From the sequence record OR770614.1: 64,000 nucleotides of DNA; one strand, written 5' to 3'. The notes beneath the pieces are model-generated. The model searched no databases. It worked only from the letters and a program-made list of their open reading frames with translations, and was not told the origin of the DNA. Position numbers and translations under genes: made by a program. Positions 1,903 through 36,374 of the stretch are shown here, piece after piece (position 1 is the stretch's first letter; each line of letters starts with the position of its first letter).

Positions 1903-2700
1903 TTATGCATTTGCTGGTTTAGATTCTTTTTTATCACTTTTTTTCCCAGCAGCATTAATAGCTTTAGCAGCAGAAAATGCAGTAGCTAAAGTTTGATTAG
2001 AAAGTTTAATTGATTTAGTAATAGCTGAACTAGATAAAGAATGTGCTTTACTAGCATTTGATGCTACACGTTTGTTTTCATTAATAGCTTCTTTATCTTC
2101 TTTAGCAGCAGCTGCTACACCAGCTTTAGCAGCTTCTTGAGCTTTCTTATTAGATTGAGAAACTACACTAGCTGCAGCTTTAACTTTTGAAACTGAGTAA
2201 GAAGCAGCTTTAACAGCATCTCTAGCGTCAGAGATTTTTTTAATTGAACCTTTTACAATATGTTTCTCATCATTAAGACCAGATTTAGCATTTTCAAATC
2301 CACGATCAAAATGAGGACTATCAGCTTTAGCTAATTCTTGTAAGTTTTTCAAAGCAGATGAAGCTAATAGCGTATAACTTCTAGCTTCTTCTAATTCAGC
2401 TTTTGATTTAACTCCTTCAACATATTTTTTAACGTCAGTTAAACGATATTCTAATTTTTTATATACTTCTACAAAGAAAGTAGTGAATTTTTTAAATGCG
2501 TCTGAAATAGCCTTAGCAATTTTAATAAAGAAATCTTTAGCTTTTTTAGCAAGTTCTCCCGCTTTTGAAGGTTTTTTCTCTTCTTCTTCTTCACTAGCTT
2601 CATTTAGAGCATTAACACTTTCTAAAACAAAAAGTTCTGTTTGAGATGCAGAAAGTTCTTCTTGTAAGAAAGACATTTCAAATGATTGATTTTGCAACAT
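1903..2700 (-). CDS. Putative virion head/internal protein, paralog family A (Ala/Lys-rich)
   Basis: 265 aa; LQEE/LNEA leader and KAKDFFIKIAKAISDAFKKFTTFF helix. Confidence 0.55.
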   Translation of the reverse strand: MLQNQSFEMSFLQEELSASQTELFVLESVNALNEASEEEEEKKPSKAGELAKKAKDFFIKIAKAISDAFKKFTTFFVEVYKKLEYRLTDVKKYVEGVKSKAELEEARSYTLLASSALKNLQELAKADSPHFDRGFENAKSGLNDEKHIVKGSIKKISDARDAVKAASYSVSKVKAAASVVSQSNKKAQEAAKAGVAAAAKEDKEAINENKRVASNASKAHSLSSSAITKSIKLSNQTLATAFSAAKAINAAGKKSDKKESKPANA

Positions 2701-2739
2701 TATATTTTTCCTCCATTTATTTTTAATTTATTTTAATAT

Positions 2740-3828
2740 TTAGAATCTAATATTAAAATCATTTTCTAATTCTTTTCCAATTTCAACGTCAATAGATTCT
2801 GATTCTGATCTAGACTGAACTTCAGCTACACCATCTTCAATATCTATTTTATCAGCTAATTTATTTAATCTTTCAGCCATTTTTTCCTGTTTCTTACGTG
2901 CTGAATCACTAATATCATTATCTTTTTCACCTTCAATAATACTAACAGCATCACGTAAATATTCAGCAAAATCTGAACGTTTTTTAATAAAATAAATATA
3001 AGCTTGTTTAATCATTAATAATACCATTGGAGCTAAGGCAATAACAAGTATTCCACCTGCAGCCACTTTAGTTCCTTTATTTAATGATTTTAATTTATTC
3101 ATGATAGTTCCTAAAGCACCATCTTTATATGCTTCACTAGCATCGTCTGCAAGTTTTTTAAAATCAAATTCTTCATTTGTAGAAACAAATGAGCCATCAA
3201 TTTTAAAAATTTCTTTTAGTTTTCCAGCTTTATATGTTTTTAAAAGATTATCTAAAGTTTTAAGCTCTATTGAATCTTTTTTACTTAATTTTTTATCAGT
3301 GAATTTTAAATTTCCATTAAGATCTTTTTCAAATCCTAAGAAGAAAAGTTGTACTGTAGCTGACATAACAGAAGCAGCTATAGTTGTATAAGTCAATTGA
3401 CCTACTTCATTATCATTTGTAAAACATTTTTTAAAATTTTGTTTTTCTTTTTCAAGCAATTTTACAGAATTCTCAATAGTGTCAAAAGCGAAAATAAGTG
3501 TTTTGTCAAAGCCTTTAGATTTTTGAGCTTTTATGTAATTAAAAGTTTTCTCAAAATCTTTATACGCTTTGATTTTCTTAAAATCACCCTTACTAGAAAG
3601 AATTGATTTTAAGTTTTTATTTCCAGATTTTTTCAACAGTTTATCAGACATTTTAGCTACGCTTAAACCAAGAGCTTCTACTTGCTCTTCAGGTGATAAA
3701 CGTTTAAAAGGTCTGAAGGGTAAAGAGAATTCCTGTAAAACTTTTTGAGACATTGCATCTTCATTTAAAAGATGTTTACGTTCAAGTTCCACAGAGAATT
3801 CCACTTCCTTTCTAGAGTTAATATACAA
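2740..3828 (-). CDS. Hypothetical, probably virion protein
   Basis: 362 aa; late-type promoter AACA-N6-TA at 3888-3899; LLNED/TNEE motifs. Confidence 0.5.
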   Translation of the reverse strand: MYINSRKEVEFSVELERKHLLNEDAMSQKVLQEFSLPFRPFKRLSPEEQVEALGLSVAKMSDKLLKKSGNKNLKSILSSKGDFKKIKAYKDFEKTFNYIKAQKSKGFDKTLIFAFDTIENSVKLLEKEKQNFKKCFTNDNEVGQLTYTTIAASVMSATVQLFFLGFEKDLNGNLKFTDKKLSKKDSIELKTLDNLLKTYKAGKLKEIFKIDGSFVSTNEEFDFKKLADDASEAYKDGALGTIMNKLKSLNKGTKVAAGGILVIALAPMVLLMIKQAYIYFIKKRSDFAEYLRDAVSIIEGEKDNDISDSARKKQEKMAERLNKLADKIDIEDGVAEVQSRSESESIDVEIGKELENDFNIRF

Positions 3829-19678: not shown

Positions 19679-21055
19679 TTAATAAATATAATCTTCGATA
19701 TCAATTTCATTTTGTTTAATTGTCATATCATGGAAAGACTTCATGGAGCTTGTTACAATTGCTTGAGCTACCTGATTGACTAATAAACCAATATTTTCAA
19801 TACCTAATTTGTAAGGTAATTCTCCTGCACATTTACTACAAATATCTTCACTCGCACAATACATAGGACTTCTGAAGTTCAATACTTTCTCAATATACTC
19901 ATCTACATTTTCAGGAGTTAATAATATTAATTGACCTTTTCTTCCTGAAGTATTTTCAAAATATCTATAAAGTAAAAGACTTGCATTATCTTTAGTTAAA
20001 GTTAATTTTAATGTATGTTTTGTTCTACAATCAGAACCTTGTTTATCTAATACAGTTGTTTGGAAAGCGGACATAAGTTTTTTAGCTTGATCATTTTATT
20101 ATCTATATTTTACTATAGATTAGACTATATCTTATGAATTTAATCATTTCTATATTTAGTCGTTGGACAACTTTATTAAGTTGATGCTAGTTAGTTTTAA
20201 CATTCTAGCAATTAATAGAATTTATTGTGAGCATCTAATTTACCCACCTTCTTGAGTACCTAAAGCACGTCCAGCTGAACCAGCTGTCATAATATCACCA
20301 AACATATATAATTCTTCTGGATCAATTCCATCAGCTAAAGAACTCTTAGCAATACGTATTTTACTAGGATCAGCAAAATTTTTATTTGCTCCACGAATAA
20401 GAGCTGTTAATTTAAAGTTATTTTCAAAACTACCTCTTGATTTACTATCATAAATATCAAGATCTGCTAAACCTTCTAATTCTTCCTTACTTAACTTAAT
20501 TAATTCTTCTTCAATAGCACTAATAGCATTCAATTCTTCACCAGGAGTATTTAATGCTTTACCGTATTTCTCTAGTAATTCTTCTTTCTTTTGTTTAACT
20601 TTATCTGGAGCAACCATCATTGTAGTTGTTAAGCTAGAATTAATAAATCCTGCTATAGAGAAACCAAGCCATTGAAGTTTATCAATATACATATTCATAT
20701 CTTTAGTTGTAATAACGTCATTAAGTAATAAACTAGATAGTTCAGATTGTAGATTTCCTACACCTGATCCTCCCATATCTTTATTCATATATCCTATAAT
20801 AGGTCCTATTTTATTGTCTAATATAAATTTATTAAATATATATCTTCCAACTGTTGTTCTTTCATCTTTACTATTATAAACTAAATCTTTTTTAAGTTTA
20901 AATCTATCGCTAGGGTTAAACATTGGTTGTGTATTTTGTCTAAATGCAAATAATTCTTTAAGTTTATCAAGAGTAATATCTTCTTTTTTTATACTTAATA
21001 AAGTTGATATTTCTTTCTCAGATAAATCTTTTTTATCATAAGTCATATTAACCAA
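19679..21055 (-). CDS. rpoC: RNA polymerase beta' C-terminal subunit (probably virion RNAP), spliced; exons 21055-20242 and 20091-19679, 408 aa
   Basis: Splicing gives ALGTQEGGYQAKKLMSAF (bridge helix/switch); RSPMYC..ICSKC Zn site; SMKSFH trigger loop; late promoter 21089-21100. Confidence 0.88.
20092..20241 (-). mobile_element. Group I intron, 150 nt, no ORF
   Basis: P1 GTGGGT/GCTCAC with U-G splice pair; P AATTGCTAG, Q CTAGCATC, R TCCAACGACTA, S AAGATATAGTCT; terminal G. Confidence 0.9.
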
Positions 21056-21371: not shown

Positions 21372-24300
21372 GTGAAGTATCTTAATAGATTAAAGAATTT
21401 AAAATTCTATTCAATTTCAGGATATAAGATTAAAGCTATAGATGAAAATATTAAGGATCAAAAGAAAAACCAATTAATAATTTATAAAGGTTTTAAAGAA
21501 AATTCATTTATAGAATTCTTAAATAGTGGTATATTATATTATCAAAATTTCAAGAATATTTATACTCCTAGAATATATAGAACATCAAATAGAAAATCAA
21601 GATTAATTACTAATATTTCAGATTACCAACAAGAAATTAAAAGTAAATCAATCAAATCTTATAGAGTAGAAAGAAATGAGAAATTATTTAAAGGTAGAAA
21701 TTATATAGTTGATTCAAGTAAATTTATCAATCTTGAAAATAAATCTTTAATGACTAAGAATTTTAAAACTGTATTAGATTCAATTAAAAATACTTATAAT
21801 AATTTAAATAATCCAGAAGAATATGAAAATTTATTATATGTAATTAATGTAGATGGATACAATAAATCTTCTCAAGAAGCTATTAGACCAAATACAAAAG
21901 ATTTTATGTCAAGTTTATTTATGATGATTAAGAATCAGGAAGAATTACCTCACAAAGAAAATCAAAATGTAGTAGCTTTATTTGTTTCTATTGAGAACGG
22001 TATAATGTTCAAATTTGATTTTAAAGATTATAATAAATTGAATAATAGATTAAGACAAAGGTTAAGAAGAGCTATTGATTTAAATACTCAACAAATGGAT
22101 ACAGATGAAATTTCTAATGTTGAAGATGATGATAATACAGAAGCTATAGATTCAACTATTAAAAAGAAATCATTTAACAATGTTAAAGATATTGATCCAA
22201 TTGAATTACAAGATAATAATAAAGATGAAATTAATCAAAACATTGAAGATTCTAAGATGGAAAAAATATCTAAGAAAATAGATGATACATTAAGATATAT
22301 CAAATCTAATGATAATATTGATATGGATATTAATGATGAGTATAATATTGCAATGATAATTGAAAAAGAATTAAATGATAATAATGATCTTATTGATATT
22401 GATGAAGATACATTATATAATGATGTACTTGATAAGAATGATTCATTTAAATCAATTAAAAGAGATATTAAAAATAAATCATATATTGGAGACACTGCAT
22501 TAAAGAATTCTAAAAAGATATTATCATTATCTAAAAATCAAGATGAATATCTTGAAAAATTAGAAGATTTTAGTTTCTCTGAAGATAGTGTTATTGATAG
22601 AGAGATTAATGAAAATGTTAATAGTATTAATGATGAAGCAATCAACAATGTATCTTCGAATGATTTTGACTTATCTTATATGAAAAAGACATTTAATAAA
22701 GACTTTGTAAATATCATGAAGAGTTTTAATGATAAAGAAGAAATACCTGTATTCATTAGCAAAATGAATGTAGAAGATAATTCAGATTCTCAATCATTAA
22801 AAAATACTGTAAAAGTCCAATTTAAGAGTCCTGATGGGATTAATCATAATGTAAAATTTGATGTACCTAAAATTATTGATGGTAAATATTTAAAATTAAA
22901 TGGTGGTAAAAAGGTACTAACTAAACAATTAATGATGTATCCTATTGTTAAATATAGACCAGATACAGTTTGGATTACAACTAACTATAATAAATTCATC
23001 ATTGAAAAATTTGGTAGCAAAGAAAATTCTGAAACTGAATGGCTTAAAAAAGTTATTGAAGATAAACAAGTACTAGAATACATTAAAGATAAAAATGATA
23101 TTAGTATTCAAAAAGGTAATTCATCTTTAATTAATAAAGAATATTTAACTTCTGTGTTGTATAATAATTTATCTAAAAATATATTAAGATTCTCTAAAGA
23201 TGATTTAATAATTGATTTTAATCAAAGAAATCTTAAAAAAGTTATTTCAGAAAGTAAAACTTTAAGTGAGATTGATTACGATAAAGATAAATACTATCCT
23301 ATCGGTTATAATTCAAACAAATCTAAATTAATATTGTCAAATACTACAGAATCTATTATTTTTAAAGCTACTAAAAGTAATATAGAATCCATGAATATTA
23401 ATATCACAGATTATATTATTGAACAACTTGAAGATAATATTGATTTTAGTCTAATAGATAAAAAATTCAGTAAAAATATTCAAGCTAGTAAAACAATGGC
23501 ATTCTCTCGTGTTAAAATTACTAATAAATTAATCCCTACAATAGTGTTATTAGGTTTCTATAAAGGTTTAACTAGTATTCTTGATCTCTATGAAGTTGAT
23601 TATAAGTTTGTTAAGGAAAATGAAAGAATAACTATTAAAGATAAAAAGAATAAAATTAAATTCCAAGATGGTTATCTTATTTATTCAACAGATAAATTAA
23701 GATATGATTTATTATTATCAGGATTAAATACTATTCCTACTTCACAATATGACTTTGAAGAATTTAATAGTGAAACACCTTACTTAGAATACTTTAATGA
23801 TAAGTTCTATAGTCGTAATGTTGGTAAAGGTATTAAAAATGCATTAGATTTAGCAATGGATCCTATTACAGAAGATGTATTAAGAGATTTAAAATTACCT
23901 GAAACTATGGTAGAATTATTACTCTTAGCTAATACCATGCTAGAAGATGTAACTGCTAGAGAACACAATGACATGGGAATATATCGTGTACGTGGTCCAG
24001 AACAAGTTAATGCTTTAATATATAAAATGATTGCAAATGCATATAAAGAATATTCAGACTCTTACAATAATAAGAATCCTAAGAATATTTCTGTTAAGCA
24101 AGACCAATTAATCAAAACTATAATGGAACAACCTACTGTAGATGAAGTATCTGATCTTAATCCATCTTTAGAGATTGATAAGATGACTTCTGTTACATTT
24201 AAAGGTCCAGCAGGACGTAATAATGAACAATCATATGAACCTGACATTCGTTCATACAGTGAAAGTATGCAAGGTGTATTAGGAATATCTAGTCCTGATT

Positions 24301-25982
24301 CTAATAAAATTGGGGTAGTTAGACAGCTTTCATATAATTCACTAATTAAATCTACTAGAGGTTATACAGATGGTGGTAAAAAAGATGCTAATGACACATC
24401 TCTATATACTCCATTAGAACTACTTAACCCATATTCTAGTAGACATGCCGATGATCAAACATGGATAGTCGGCTTAAAAACTATTTAATTGCTGAAATTA
24501 CTTTAAAGTTAATCAGCATCAATCAAATTGTTCAACGACTAAATAATAGTTACTAATTATATAATTAGTAATGATATAGTCTCAACTATGTATAAAGTAT
24601 ATAGAAATAAGATAATGTCTCCACGTATTGGAATGACTGGTACTCAAGCCAAGCACGTAATTCCAACAAAAACTAATAGTAAACCATTAGTTGGATCTGG
24701 TGTTGATAAATCTTTAGCTTATCAATTATCAGATACATTTGCTTTTAAAGCTAAGCAAGATGGTAAAGTATTAAAAATTAATGAGAAAACTGGTTTAATG
24801 ACAGTGGAATATATCAATGGTGAAAAAGATATTGTTGATATATCTGAAAAATTAGCCAAAAACTCTAACTCAGGTTTTTATCAATCTAATAAACTTGATC
24901 CACAATTTAACGTAGACGACACTTTTAATAAAGGTCAAATACTTGCTAAAAATAATAATTTCTTTGCTGGATCTGGTAAAAATAATGATATTCAATTCAC
25001 TTCAGGTAAATTATCTAAAGTATCTGTAGCTAGCTCATATGGTATTATAAATGCCTTTCATTATAGTAATGTAATGTCAAAAAATTATTAATTGCTGAGA
25101 AATATTAAATTAATCAGCATCTCTATATTTATAGAGTTCAACGACTAAATATAATTATTCATTAATGCTAATGAATTTGATATAGTCTAATCTATTATAA
25201 AAATATAATAGCTAATATAAATGACTTATGAAGATAGTTCTATTATTTCTAGTAGTATGTCTGAAGCAATGTCTACTAAAGTTACTATGAAGAAAACAGT
25301 AAATATTCCATCAAACACAAATATTCAATATATAGTTAAAGAAGGTCAGAAAGTACGTACAGGAGATCCTTTAATGATATTTGAAACTTCATTCGATGAA
25401 GAAGGTATTGGTTCTTTATTAGATAAAATTGGTAGTGAATTTGAACAAGATATTCAAGATATAGCTAACCGAGCTGTTAGAAGTAAATATACAGGTAATA
25501 TTAAAAAGATTAATATTTATTATAATGATGATATTGAAAATATGACTGATAGTTTAGCTAAATTAGTTAATAATTACATTAAAAAATCAAATGATAAATA
25601 TAAAGAATATAAATCTGGAATTAAAAATAATAAAGAAACTTTACCTGGTATTGATGTAGATATCGCTGCAGTTGATAAAATTAATACAGAGAAAATTAAA
25701 GGGGAAAAAGTTGACGGAGTTCTTATTGAAATCTTCACTGAGTATGAAGATGATATGAGTGTTGGAGATAAAATTAGTTTCTATGGAGCTTGTAAAACTG
25801 TAGTTGCTGATGTAACTCCTCCAAATGAATCTCCTTATGCAGAATATAGACCTGATGAGGAAATCGAAGCTGTATTCTCTCCATTAAGTATTGTCTCTCG
25901 TATGACAGTTGATATTTACATGATGCTATTTACAAATAAAGCTTTAATAGAATTAAAACGTAAAGTAAAAGATATGATTTAA
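21372..25982 (+). CDS. rpoB: RNA polymerase beta subunit (probably virion RNAP, phiKZ gp178-like size), spliced; exons 21372-24452, 24618-25043, 25224-25982, 1421 aa
   Basis: KYLKLNGGK, SPDSNKIGVVRQL, spliced HADSPRIGM and SSYGTYED, GDKISFYGACKTVV, PLSIVSRM; late promoter 21324-21335. Confidence 0.88.
24453..24617 (+). mobile_element. Group I intron, 165 nt, no ORF
   Basis: P1 GCCGAT/GTCGGC; P AATTGCTGA, Q AATCAGCATC, R GTTCAACGACTA, S GATATAGTCT; terminal G at 24617. Confidence 0.9.
25044..25223 (+). mobile_element. Group I intron, 180 nt, no ORF
   Basis: P1 GGTAT/ATGCC; same P/Q/R/S core; ends AATATAAATG; splicing yields YG|TYED. Confidence 0.9.
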
Positions 25983-29029: not shown

Positions 29030-30298
29030 ATGGGTTATTTTATTAGTAATGATGATCTTCAACCGAAAGATATTGTAAATAGTTATGTATCTTCATATCT
29101 TTCAGGTACTGAAAAGTATAGTAAATTCCAAGCTGGAGCTCCTAGTTTTGTTACTTATTACAGTAAAGATCATGAGAACTCAACCTCAGATAGATCATTA
29201 GATAATGTTGAAGAAATTGTTGGAGATAATTCTCCACTTAAATATAATAAATTAAAAGATTTTCCTATATATTCTGTTACTGAAATGAATCCTACTATAG
29301 AATGGGATGAAGAGTGGGGAACTGAAAAAGATTTAGAAAGTGAAGCTGTAATATTACCTGGAACTATTGAACCTCTTCCAGATGATTTTATTGTATTTCA
29401 GTATCAAACTAAAGATAATTTAAATAGTAGAATATATAGAGTAAATAATGTAGAAATGAGTTCATTAGAAAATTCATCATATTATAAAATAAGTTACCAG
29501 AATTTTAATGTAAATACAGAAGATATTGAAAGACAAGTTTCTAATACTTATAGAACTGTATTTTCTAATATTGGTACAGATAATAAATCATTGATATTAG
29601 AAGAAGATTTCTATCAAGTTAATAATAGTATTAAATACTCCGATGAAATATCTGCGTTAATTATTGATAATTTCTATAATTCTTCATTAAATACATTCAT
29701 TTATTATGAAGATGAAATTAGTGCAATAGCAAATATAAAATATATAGATTTAAATTTATCTAGATTTATATACGATAATAATTTATTAGTAAAGTCTAGT
29801 ACCTATTTATCAAACATAATGCCTTATAAAGATAAAAATCCTAAAAATGAAAGAATAAACCAGAAAAATTATAAATATTCTTTATATGAAAGATTGAAAG
29901 ATAGAAAAGAATTACCTAATATAATAACTTTAGATGAAACTAAAGATAATTTTTTAAAAATGTTTAGAGAGAAATATTTAGAGATTAACTTTATGAATAA
30001 AGCTCTTCATGATACAAAAATATTAAATGATATGAATGATTTCACTGAATTATCTAATATAAGTAAGATTAATAGAATTAATGAAGATTATCAAGGTTTA
30101 AATAGTTTAACTGATCTTGATGAACGTTATAAATTAATTATACTATACTTACAAAAAGATAATATTGATGAAAAAATTCTTGATAAAATATTTAAGTACT
30201 ATGACAATAAATTTGAATTAGATATGGAAGATTATATATTATTACCATGCATATTATTTATTATAAAGAATAATATTGAATCTAAATTTAAAAAATAA
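29030..30298 (+). CDS. Virion structural protein, possibly neck/head-completion
   Basis: 422 aa; PLPDDFIVF..IYRVNNVE resembles head-closure proteins; late promoter 28974-28985. Confidence 0.4.
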   Translation: MGYFISNDDLQPKDIVNSYVSSYLSGTEKYSKFQAGAPSFVTYYSKDHENSTSDRSLDNVEEIVGDNSPLKYNKLKDFPIYSVTEMNPTIEWDEEWGTEKDLESEAVILPGTIEPLPDDFIVFQYQTKDNLNSRIYRVNNVEMSSLENSSYYKISYQNFNVNTEDIERQVSNTYRTVFSNIGTDNKSLILEEDFYQVNNSIKYSDEISALIIDNFYNSSLNTFIYYEDEISAIANIKYIDLNLSRFIYDNNLLVKSSTYLSNIMPYKDKNPKNERINQKNYKYSLYERLKDRKELPNIITLDETKDNFLKMFREKYLEINFMNKALHDTKILNDMNDFTELSNISKINRINEDYQGLNSLTDLDERYKLIILYLQKDNIDEKILDKIFKYYDNKFELDMEDYILLPCILFIIKNNIESKFKK

Positions 30299-35411: not shown

Positions 35412-36374
35412 ATGGCTAAAAAACATATCGGTACATGGAACGGTGTTCCTGTATATACTGATTTTTTACCAATAGGTACTCGTAGAGCTGGAGATAAGCT
35501 TAACGGACCTAAATTTATTGTTGCTCATGACACTGGGAACCCTAACACTACAGCACAAAATAATGTAGATTACTACCGTAATTCATATAATATTGATTGG
35601 AATTATACAGCATCAGCTCATATCTTTGTTGATGATAAAGAATGTATTATCTGTGTTCCTTTAGATGAAAAAGCATGGCACGTTATGTATGGTACACCTA
35701 CAGATAATGCTTGGTATGGAGTGGATGCAAACGATTCAGCAATTGGAGTAGAAGGATGTTACTTCTCAGACCGTAATCGTTCATTAAAATCATTTGATAA
35801 TTACTGTCGTGTATTAGCTTATTTATGTAAAACATATAAGATTAACGCTAGCACAAATATGCCTGGACATCAAGATATTCAGGCAGATAAACAAGATCCA
35901 GGTAACTTATTAGCTGCGTGCGGTATGTCTCGTAGTGTTTCTAATGTAGATAAAAAAGTATTAGCTTATATGAAATCTGGTGTTACTTCGACTGCAAAAG
36001 ACAGTAAAACAACTAAAGTTGCTACTAAAGAAGAAGTTGCTAAGAAAGCTCCAGCTAAACCGGCTAAAACTTCAACTGTAACTTCTAAAACTTGGAAACG
36101 TAATTCTGCAGGAATTCTATGGAAAACTGAAAAAGCTACATTTAAATGTGGTGTTTCAGTAGGTATTAAAACTCGTAAAGGTGGTCCATGGACTGGATGG
36201 CCGCAAGGTCCATTTATGGCTAAAGGAGATACTATTAAATATGATGAAATTCAAGATTTTGATGGTTATATTTGGGTATCAGGTAACTTTAAAGGTCAAT
36301 ATGTTTATGTACCGGTTGGTAAATCAACAGGAAATGGTAAACGTGTAGGGCCAGCATGGGGTACATTTAGTTAA
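35412..36374 (+). CDS. N-acetylmuramoyl-L-alanine amidase (Amidase_2) with SH3b cell-wall-binding domain
   Basis: IVAHDTGN, SAHIFVD, AWHV, E-C, GHQDI..KQDPG; C-terminal IKYDEIQDFDGYIWVS; late promoter 35372-35383. Confidence 0.9.
   Translation: MAKKHIGTWNGVPVYTDFLPIGTRRAGDKLNGPKFIVAHDTGNPNTTAQNNVDYYRNSYNIDWNYTASAHIFVDDKECIICVPLDEKAWHVMYGTPTDNAWYGVDANDSAIGVEGCYFSDRNRSLKSFDNYCRVLAYLCKTYKINASTNMPGHQDIQADKQDPGNLLAACGMSRSVSNVDKKVLAYMKSGVTSTAKDSKTTKVATKEEVAKKAPAKPAKTSTVTSKTWKRNSAGILWKTEKATFKCGVSVGIKTRKGGPWTGWPQGPFMAKGDTIKYDEIQDFDGYIWVSGNFKGQYVYVPVGKSTGNGKRVGPAWGTFS

Follow-up and report, generated by a model that had tools for sequence, protein, structure and literature searches.

A minimal ORF-less group I intron within the virion RNA polymerase beta-like gene of the Staphylococcus jumbo phage PB50

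Positions 24453-24617 of the DNA analysed here are very probably a real, very small and minimal group I intron, devoid of an open reading frame (ORF), in the virion RNA polymerase beta-like gene of the Staphylococcus jumbo phage vB_StaM_PB50, and this degree of confidence extends to the whole explanation offered below, its mechanism included. Its boundaries, ribozyme fold, covariation, presence/absence polymorphism among related phages and exactly joined contig from an RNA library are each demonstrated in the following sections. The central proposal of a preliminary description of this DNA, a group I intron in an RNA polymerase beta gene, is thereby borne out from several directions: the Rfam match, the covariation, compensatory changes in P1 and P10, the Rpb2 domain of the third exon, the alignment of HADSPR with HNDANR and the RNA-library contig.

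The novelty that the same description implied was overstated. The kind of intron, and even the orthologous intron itself, was already known from the annotation of phage Madawaska and from published introns in these genes of AR9 and the MarsHill-like phages. What is new is the correction of the PB50 annotation, an explicit ribozyme model with covariation, the co-variation of P1 and P10, the joint in the RNA library, and the place of this intron in a large family of mini-introns that falls below the Rfam threshold. The intron is more interesting as a member of that family than alone.

A polymerase gene interrupted within a conserved motif

The window, that is, the whole stretch of 64,000 nucleotides that was analysed, corresponds to positions 186001-250000 of record OR770614.1 (273,701 bp), and window coordinates, used throughout unless a record coordinate is specified, are obtained by subtracting 186,000 from those of the record. 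PB50 belongs to the AR9-like jumbo phages and has a G+C content of about 24%. Its GenBank record gives three consecutive coding sequences (CDS), all named 'viral RNA polymerase beta subunit' (21372-24488, 24588-25091 and 25221-25982), and does not annotate 24453-24617 as an intron; the AH12 record gives the pieces of the same beta gene as 'hypothetical protein'. In phage S6 (LC680885, CDS BDE75638) the gene is a single uninterrupted ORF of 4254 nt encoding 1417 aa. Relative to S6, PB50 carries an insertion of exactly 165 nt after the D codon, being collinear up to 24452 and again from 24618 in both blastn and alignment, and a second insertion of exactly 180 nt at 25044-25223. The gene thus resolves into the following parts:

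21372-24452, plus strand: exon 1 of the virion RNA polymerase beta-like gene, 1027 codons, ending ...SSRHAD; collinear with S6 BDE75638 exactly to 24452
24453-24617, plus strand: ORF-less group I intron, 165 nt, 24% G+C, beginning with G and ending with the terminal G 24617; from Rfam RF00028, the S6 gap and the RNA-library contig
24618-25043, plus strand: exon 2, 142 codons, beginning SPRIGMTGTQAKH; collinear with S6 and joined to exons 1 and 3 in the RNA-library contig
25044-25223, plus strand: second mini group I intron of the same family, 180 nt; a gap relative to S6 and Madawaska, matched by the family model R1 (see below) at record 211080-211188, and skipped in the RNA-library contig
25224-25982, plus strand: exon 3, 252 codons and stop, RNA polymerase Rpb2 domain 6; collinear with S6

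All three exons contain whole numbers of codons. Exon 1 ends with CAT GCC GAT (H-A-D), and the frame resumes at 24618 with TCT CCA CGT ATT GGA ATG (S-P-R-I-G-M). When searched separately, exon 3 recovers the Pfam domain RNA_pol_Rpb2_6 (PF00562, E 2e-8), and the rHADSPRIGM of the S6 ortholog aligns with eHNDANRALM of the plastid RNA polymerase beta subunit (8r5o_C). Judged by this alignment, the intron site is within the universally conserved beta motif HxD-xxR-xxM, which it splits as HAD|SPRIGM. Insertion into conserved motifs is typical of phage group I introns (PMC12908238).

The three-CDS annotation of PB50 is wrong: the CDS starts at 24588 (in P9 of the first intron) and 25221 (in the tail of the second) are annotation artefacts that lie inside introns. 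The PB50 and AH12 records present an essential polymerase subunit as fragments, in the form of separate or hypothetical genes, when the correct PB50 product is a single protein of about 1421 residues encoded by three exons. As a side observation on the second intron, 25044-25223, its P1 looks weaker by eye, with 3-4 pairs to the exon end TATGGT.

A group I core stripped of peripheral helices

A local Rfam scan matches 24453-24617 to Intron_gpI (RF00028) over model positions 1-253, that is, the whole model, with 42.5 bits and an E-value of 3e-9, a score below the Rfam gathering score of 50. Whole-window Rfam scans, at either the gathering or an E-value threshold, do not report 24453-24617, and the local scan alone found it. 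The score falls short because the peripheral helices are deleted, with the core unbroken: the Rfam alignment places P1, P3, P4-P6, the P7 strands with the conserved GACUAAA and GAUAUAGUC, P8 and P9, and deletes P2 along with the long extensions of P5, P6 and P8. The elements of the fold, all on the plus strand, are as follows:

24447-24452: exon strand of P1, GCCGAT; 6/6 pairs with the guide, U·G at the 5' splice site
24462-24467: P10 part of the internal guide, TGGATA; 5/6 pairs with the 3' exon TCTCCA
24468-24473: P1 part of the internal guide, GTCGGC (guide overall 24462-24473); pairs with the 5' exon
24479-24485 with 24545-24551: P3; encloses P4, P5, P6, J6/7 and the P7 5' strand (24479-24551)
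24486-24488: in-frame stop TAA, which is J3/4, within the P3-enclosed region
24490-24495 with 24513-24518: P4; from RNAalifold on the paralog alignment
24500-24502 with 24507-24509: P5, 3 bp; enclosed by P3
24520-24523 with 24527-24530: P6, 4 bp; from RNAalifold on the paralog alignment
24537-24541 with 24577-24581: P7 pseudoknot; 100% paired in 18 paralogs with one GACTG/CAGTC double change, and in the Rfam consensus
24552-24558 with 24563-24569: P8 hairpin, then J8/7; minimum free energy (MFE) fold and Rfam consensus
24586-24592 with 24598-24604: P9 hairpin; MFE fold and Rfam consensus

The MFE fold recovers P1, P4/P5, P8 and P9 with a z-score of -3.83, and none of 200 shuffled sequences folds as well. 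The hallmarks of group I introns are in place, namely the U·G pair in P1, the P3-P8 and P4-P6 domains including the P3/P7 pseudoknot, conserved sequences in J6/7, P7 and J8/7, and a guanosine as the last intron nucleotide; this 3' boundary at 24617 is fixed by the S6 alignment together with the contig joint.

In the 165 nt we found neither peripheral stabilising elements, be it P2, P5abc or an extended P5, P7.1/7.2, GNRA loops or an evident tetraloop-receptor pair, nor a homing endonuclease ORF, the longest internal stop-to-stop frame being 33 codons. These results agree in detail with the structural proposals of the preliminary description. The P1 helix GCCGAT/GTCGGC with its U·G splice pair forms with all six pairs between 24447-24452 and 24468-24473; the core, the tiny P5 and P6 and the terminal G are all present; and the proposed exon boundaries, HAD|SPRIGM, coincide exactly with the edges of the 165-nt gap against the intron-less S6 allele. 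The length is, as claimed, a multiple of three (55 codons), and without splicing the frame runs into the stop codon TAA at 24486-24488, giving the ORF 21372-24488.

Covariation across a family of mini-introns

By blastn, PB50 itself contains about 21 significant paralogs of the intron. R1, a covariance model of the family's P3-to-P7 core, yields the following copy numbers: PB50 22, AH12 31, Machias 30, LY01 34, Madawaska 12, MarsHill 10 and S6 0; its matches in AR9 (about 30 bits) and BpSp are weak.

In a plain MAFFT alignment of the 18 ORF-less PB50 copies, RNAalifold predicts the long-range P3 as well as P4 and P6, with double changes at 11 of 17 pairs. Across P3, P4, P6 and P7, 98.2% of the cells are paired and 12 pairs show compensatory changes; when the 3' partners are shifted by 1-3 columns, pairing drops to 24-48%, and none of 500 shuffles reaches the observed values. 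The core sequence of the paralogs is almost invariant while the helices vary. Further, the exact core motif occurs in 85 stretches of IMG/VR contigs of 200-400 kb, in which R1 has 236 matches. The 34 distinct sequences among these, an independent set, show 94.5% pairing and a covariation score of 0.62, which shifting the partners reduces to 0.13 or less. A tblastn search of the IMG/VR loci with an S6 beta fragment recovered no ortholog of the 24453-24617 insertion site.

A boundary script combining exon/guide pairing with frame continuity was applied to the 18 PB50 paralogs. It gave a clear best candidate in four (24453-24617 among them), was ambiguous in ten because the sequence is AT-rich, and found no candidate in the remaining four. 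In the four clear cases the guide pairs 6/6 with its own exon end, the lengths being 159/165 nt (24453-24617), 164, 150 and 142 nt; over the 14 paralogs with any candidate, the best candidates are about 142-192 nt long.

Another family member, at 20090-20224 on the minus strand between the ORFs 19679-20074 and 20240-21055, splits the virion RNA polymerase beta-prime gene, for which the record shows two CDS. The best model of this intron is 150 nt long, and its exon end GTGGGT pairs with the guide GCTCAC.

The same site in related phages

At the site of 24453-24617 an intron is present in PB50, AH12, Madawaska and LY01 and absent in S6, Machias, MarsHill and PALS_2, a presence/absence polymorphism of the kind displayed by mobile introns, found here in an element that has no endonuclease ORF. 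The AH12 intron is 99% identical to that of PB50, and those of Madawaska and LY01 about 80%. The two pairs of phages carry distinct alleles of the guide and its targets:

PB50/AH12: 5' exon GCCGAU, P1 guide GUCGGC; 3' exon UCUCCA, P10 guide UGGAUA
Madawaska/LY01: 5' exon GCGGAU, P1 guide GUUCGC; 3' exon UCACCU, P10 guide AGGUAA

These alleles differ by compensatory double changes, one in P1 and two in P10, which support both helices and show them to be tuned to this insertion site.

The region of the beta motif is an insertion hot spot. MarsHill (locus L035, 2469-3770) and PALS_2 (locus L036) have a 1.3-kb group I intron with a 310-aa ORF 17 nt downstream of the PB50 site, following ...ATTGGGAT and with the guide GTCCC. 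In AH12, Machias and LY01 a further mini-intron follows ...ACTGGT, and in AH12 (locus L034, about 2454-2800) and LY01 (locus L038, about 2634-3010) a 24-nt micro-exon of eight codons (TCTCCACGTATTGGAATGACTGGT or its LY01 variant) lies between two ribozymes.

An exact joint in an RNA library

One contig assembled from run X5, a metatranscriptomic RNA-seq library from a sample other than that of PB50, bears on the removal of both introns. It is 3311 nt long and about 97% like PB50 (27 differences in 1056 aligned bases), and it covers 24000-24452, 24618-25043 and 25224-25400 contiguously with no letters between them, skipping exactly the 165 nt (GA..TG) of the first intron and the 180 nt (AT..TG) of the second. 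Contigs from the DNA runs X1 and X7 keep the introns and span 24453-24617 and its borders. The joint fits a spliced mRNA and is the first RNA-level hint of exact removal; as an assembled contig from another sample, it is supportive but not decisive.

The contig may also derive from an intron-less DNA allele of a relative that was carried into the RNA library, given that DNA can occur in such libraries and that alleles without the intron exist at this site in S6, Machias, MarsHill and PALS_2. Against this, the contig matches PB50 at every base over the 33 nt that precede and the 35 nt that follow the first joint, whereas the intron-less alleles of S6, Machias, MarsHill and PALS_2 all differ from PB50 beside the junction, the first three within 12 nt around the site. 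The differences of the contig from PB50 are mostly ancestral bases common to other phages.

Proposed mechanism and the question of a helper

We infer for 24453-24617 the two-step transesterification chemistry of group I introns. In the pre-mRNA, the guide GUCGGC would pair with the exon end GCCGAU to form P1, in which the U·G pair would mark the 5' splice site, while the P3-P9 core with its P3/P7 pseudoknot would furnish the guanosine-binding catalytic centre. After the first step, P10 is predicted to align the 3' exon UCUCCA, and the terminal G 24617 would be used in exon ligation. Ligation would restore ...RHAD-SPRIGM... and, once the 180-nt intron 25044-25223 is also removed, a frame of about 1421 codons.

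We suggest, as a tentative claim to which we give somewhat less than even credence, that 24453-24617 and its paralogs are the smallest functional natural group I introns, consisting of essentially the bare catalytic core, which would either self-splice unaided or rely on a shared cofactor. A more doubtful, though by no means negligible, reading is that the intron is real and removed in vivo but too reduced to fold alone, so that splicing would depend on a protein, be it a phage product or an RNA chaperone of the host, that serves all 22 copies by recognising their nearly invariant P4/J6-7/P7 core. The 165 nt devoid of P2, an extended P5, P7.1/7.2 and tetraloop-receptor candidates speak for such a helper, as does a core that is almost invariant across paralogs with varying helices; and, as copy numbers run from 0 (S6) to 34 (LY01) in close relatives, a comparison of gene contents could reveal a trans-acting one. 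However, the 205-nt Azoarcus intron self-splices without a protein (PMC3895272), and hence small size alone requires no helper.

A real intron is far more probable than the reading suggested by the PB50 record, in which the three ORFs (21372-24488, 24588-25091 and 25221-25982) would be separate genes whose products form a further-split beta subunit, and the intron-like stretch a decayed, unspliced remnant. The record does list three 'viral RNA polymerase beta subunit' CDS, and there is precedent for split RNA polymerase genes in jumbo phages (PMC7598289). Yet, the break falls within an invariant motif, and S6 encodes the whole subunit in a single ORF; the ATGs of the second and third ORFs are located in P9 or the intron tail, and no Shine-Dalgarno-like motif precedes any of the candidate restart codons (24588, 24615 and 25221). 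The fragments thus display neither translation starts of their own nor a conserved split point, and the ribozyme retains an intact and covarying core, guide and P10, with an exact joint in the RNA-library contig. Least credible of all is a mobile non-ribozyme repeat with a chance likeness to a group I core, for although 24% G+C makes hairpins easy and the Rfam match does not reach the curated threshold, the full Rfam model is matched, the long-range P3 and the P7 pseudoknot covary (0/500 shuffles, with collapse of the slid controls), and the guides of four clear paralogs, including 24453-24617, are 6/6 complementary to their own exon ends.

Relationship to known introns

The closest precedent is CPT_Madawaska_160 (MW349129), which has the intron in the same gene at the same site, HAD|SPR, with the same length of 165 nt and the same core, and whose exons are about 80% identical to those of PB50. 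Its CDS is a two-piece join, the span of which exceeds the S6 gene by 165 nt. The Madawaska intron was predicted from protein alignment to AR9 only, without a ribozyme structure, and its guide and flanking codons differ from those of PB50 by compensatory changes. More generally, the RNA polymerase subunit genes of MarsHill, Madawaska and Machias have been described as intron-disrupted, as in AR9, with junctions predicted by protein alignment (Korn et al., bioRxiv 10.1101/2020.12.14.422802).

The PB50 ortholog in AR9 is the virion RNA polymerase beta subunit AR9_g189 (KU878088; 41-52% identity), a six-piece join interrupted in the same conserved region. Unlike PB50, AR9 is uninterrupted at HAD|PPR, and its nearby introns, of about 300-350 nt, occupy other sites. 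The introns of the AR9 virion RNA polymerase beta gene were reportedly described by Lavysh et al. in 2016.

Beyond these phages, two sets of introns invite comparison. The Azoarcus tRNA-Ile group I intron, of subgroup IC3, is 205 nt long and self-splices without protein (PMC3895272). Like the PB50 intron, it is compact with a minimal helix set, and it is the usual small self-splicing reference; the PB50 intron differs from it in being 40 nt shorter and AT-rich, in residing in a protein-coding phage gene, and in having no P2 or obvious tetraloop-receptor contacts. The classical phage group I introns (T4 td/nrdB/sunY, SPO1/SP82 DNA polymerase and Twort) are about 250-1000 nt long and often carry homing endonuclease genes (PMC12908238). 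They share with the PB50 intron a location in the conserved catalytic motif of an essential nucleic-acid enzyme and the presence/absence polymorphism among related phages, but the latter has no ORF and belongs to a family with 10-34 copies within single genomes.

All best candidate lengths of the paralogs are below the 205 nt of the Azoarcus intron, and our literature search on the smallest group I intron turned up no usable figure other than that one; nor did a search of the literature find a paper on miniature introns in jumbo phages. If the size claim is true and the introns self-splice unaided, they would push the lower size limit further down. With its dozens of covarying copies, a natural group I core of at most 165 nt would be a convenient system for studying the minimum size of a self-splicing ribozyme.

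The curated Rfam threshold misses the whole PB50 mini-intron family. At least one paper on a related phage states, on the basis of Rfam, that there are 'no intronic sequences' (PMC10638138), and this threshold is a possible reason for that report.

Spread of the family

Copy numbers between 0 (S6) and 34 (LY01) in Staphylococcus jumbo phages that are close relatives suggest that ORF-less introns have recently bloomed or been purged, and they provide a way to study how introns that have no ORF move between genomes. Some family members in PB50 have an ORF directly after the P7 5' strand, where the mini forms have P8: 53272-53343 on the minus strand (record 239272-239343), and record 35624-35692 and 29351-29429. 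One such intron ORF, starting MKEIWKDIKDFENYY..., presumably resembles HNH homing endonucleases. These ORF-carrying members may be the mobile parents of the ORF-less copies.

In IMG/VR phage contigs of 200-400 kb the mini-intron core is likewise common and often forms tandem arrays with a spacing of only about 200 nt, for example seven matches within 2.5 kb, and these arrays adjoin an RNA polymerase beta-prime-like ORF and endonuclease-like ORFs (locus L129, 417-2879 on the minus strand, and other loci among L051-L130).
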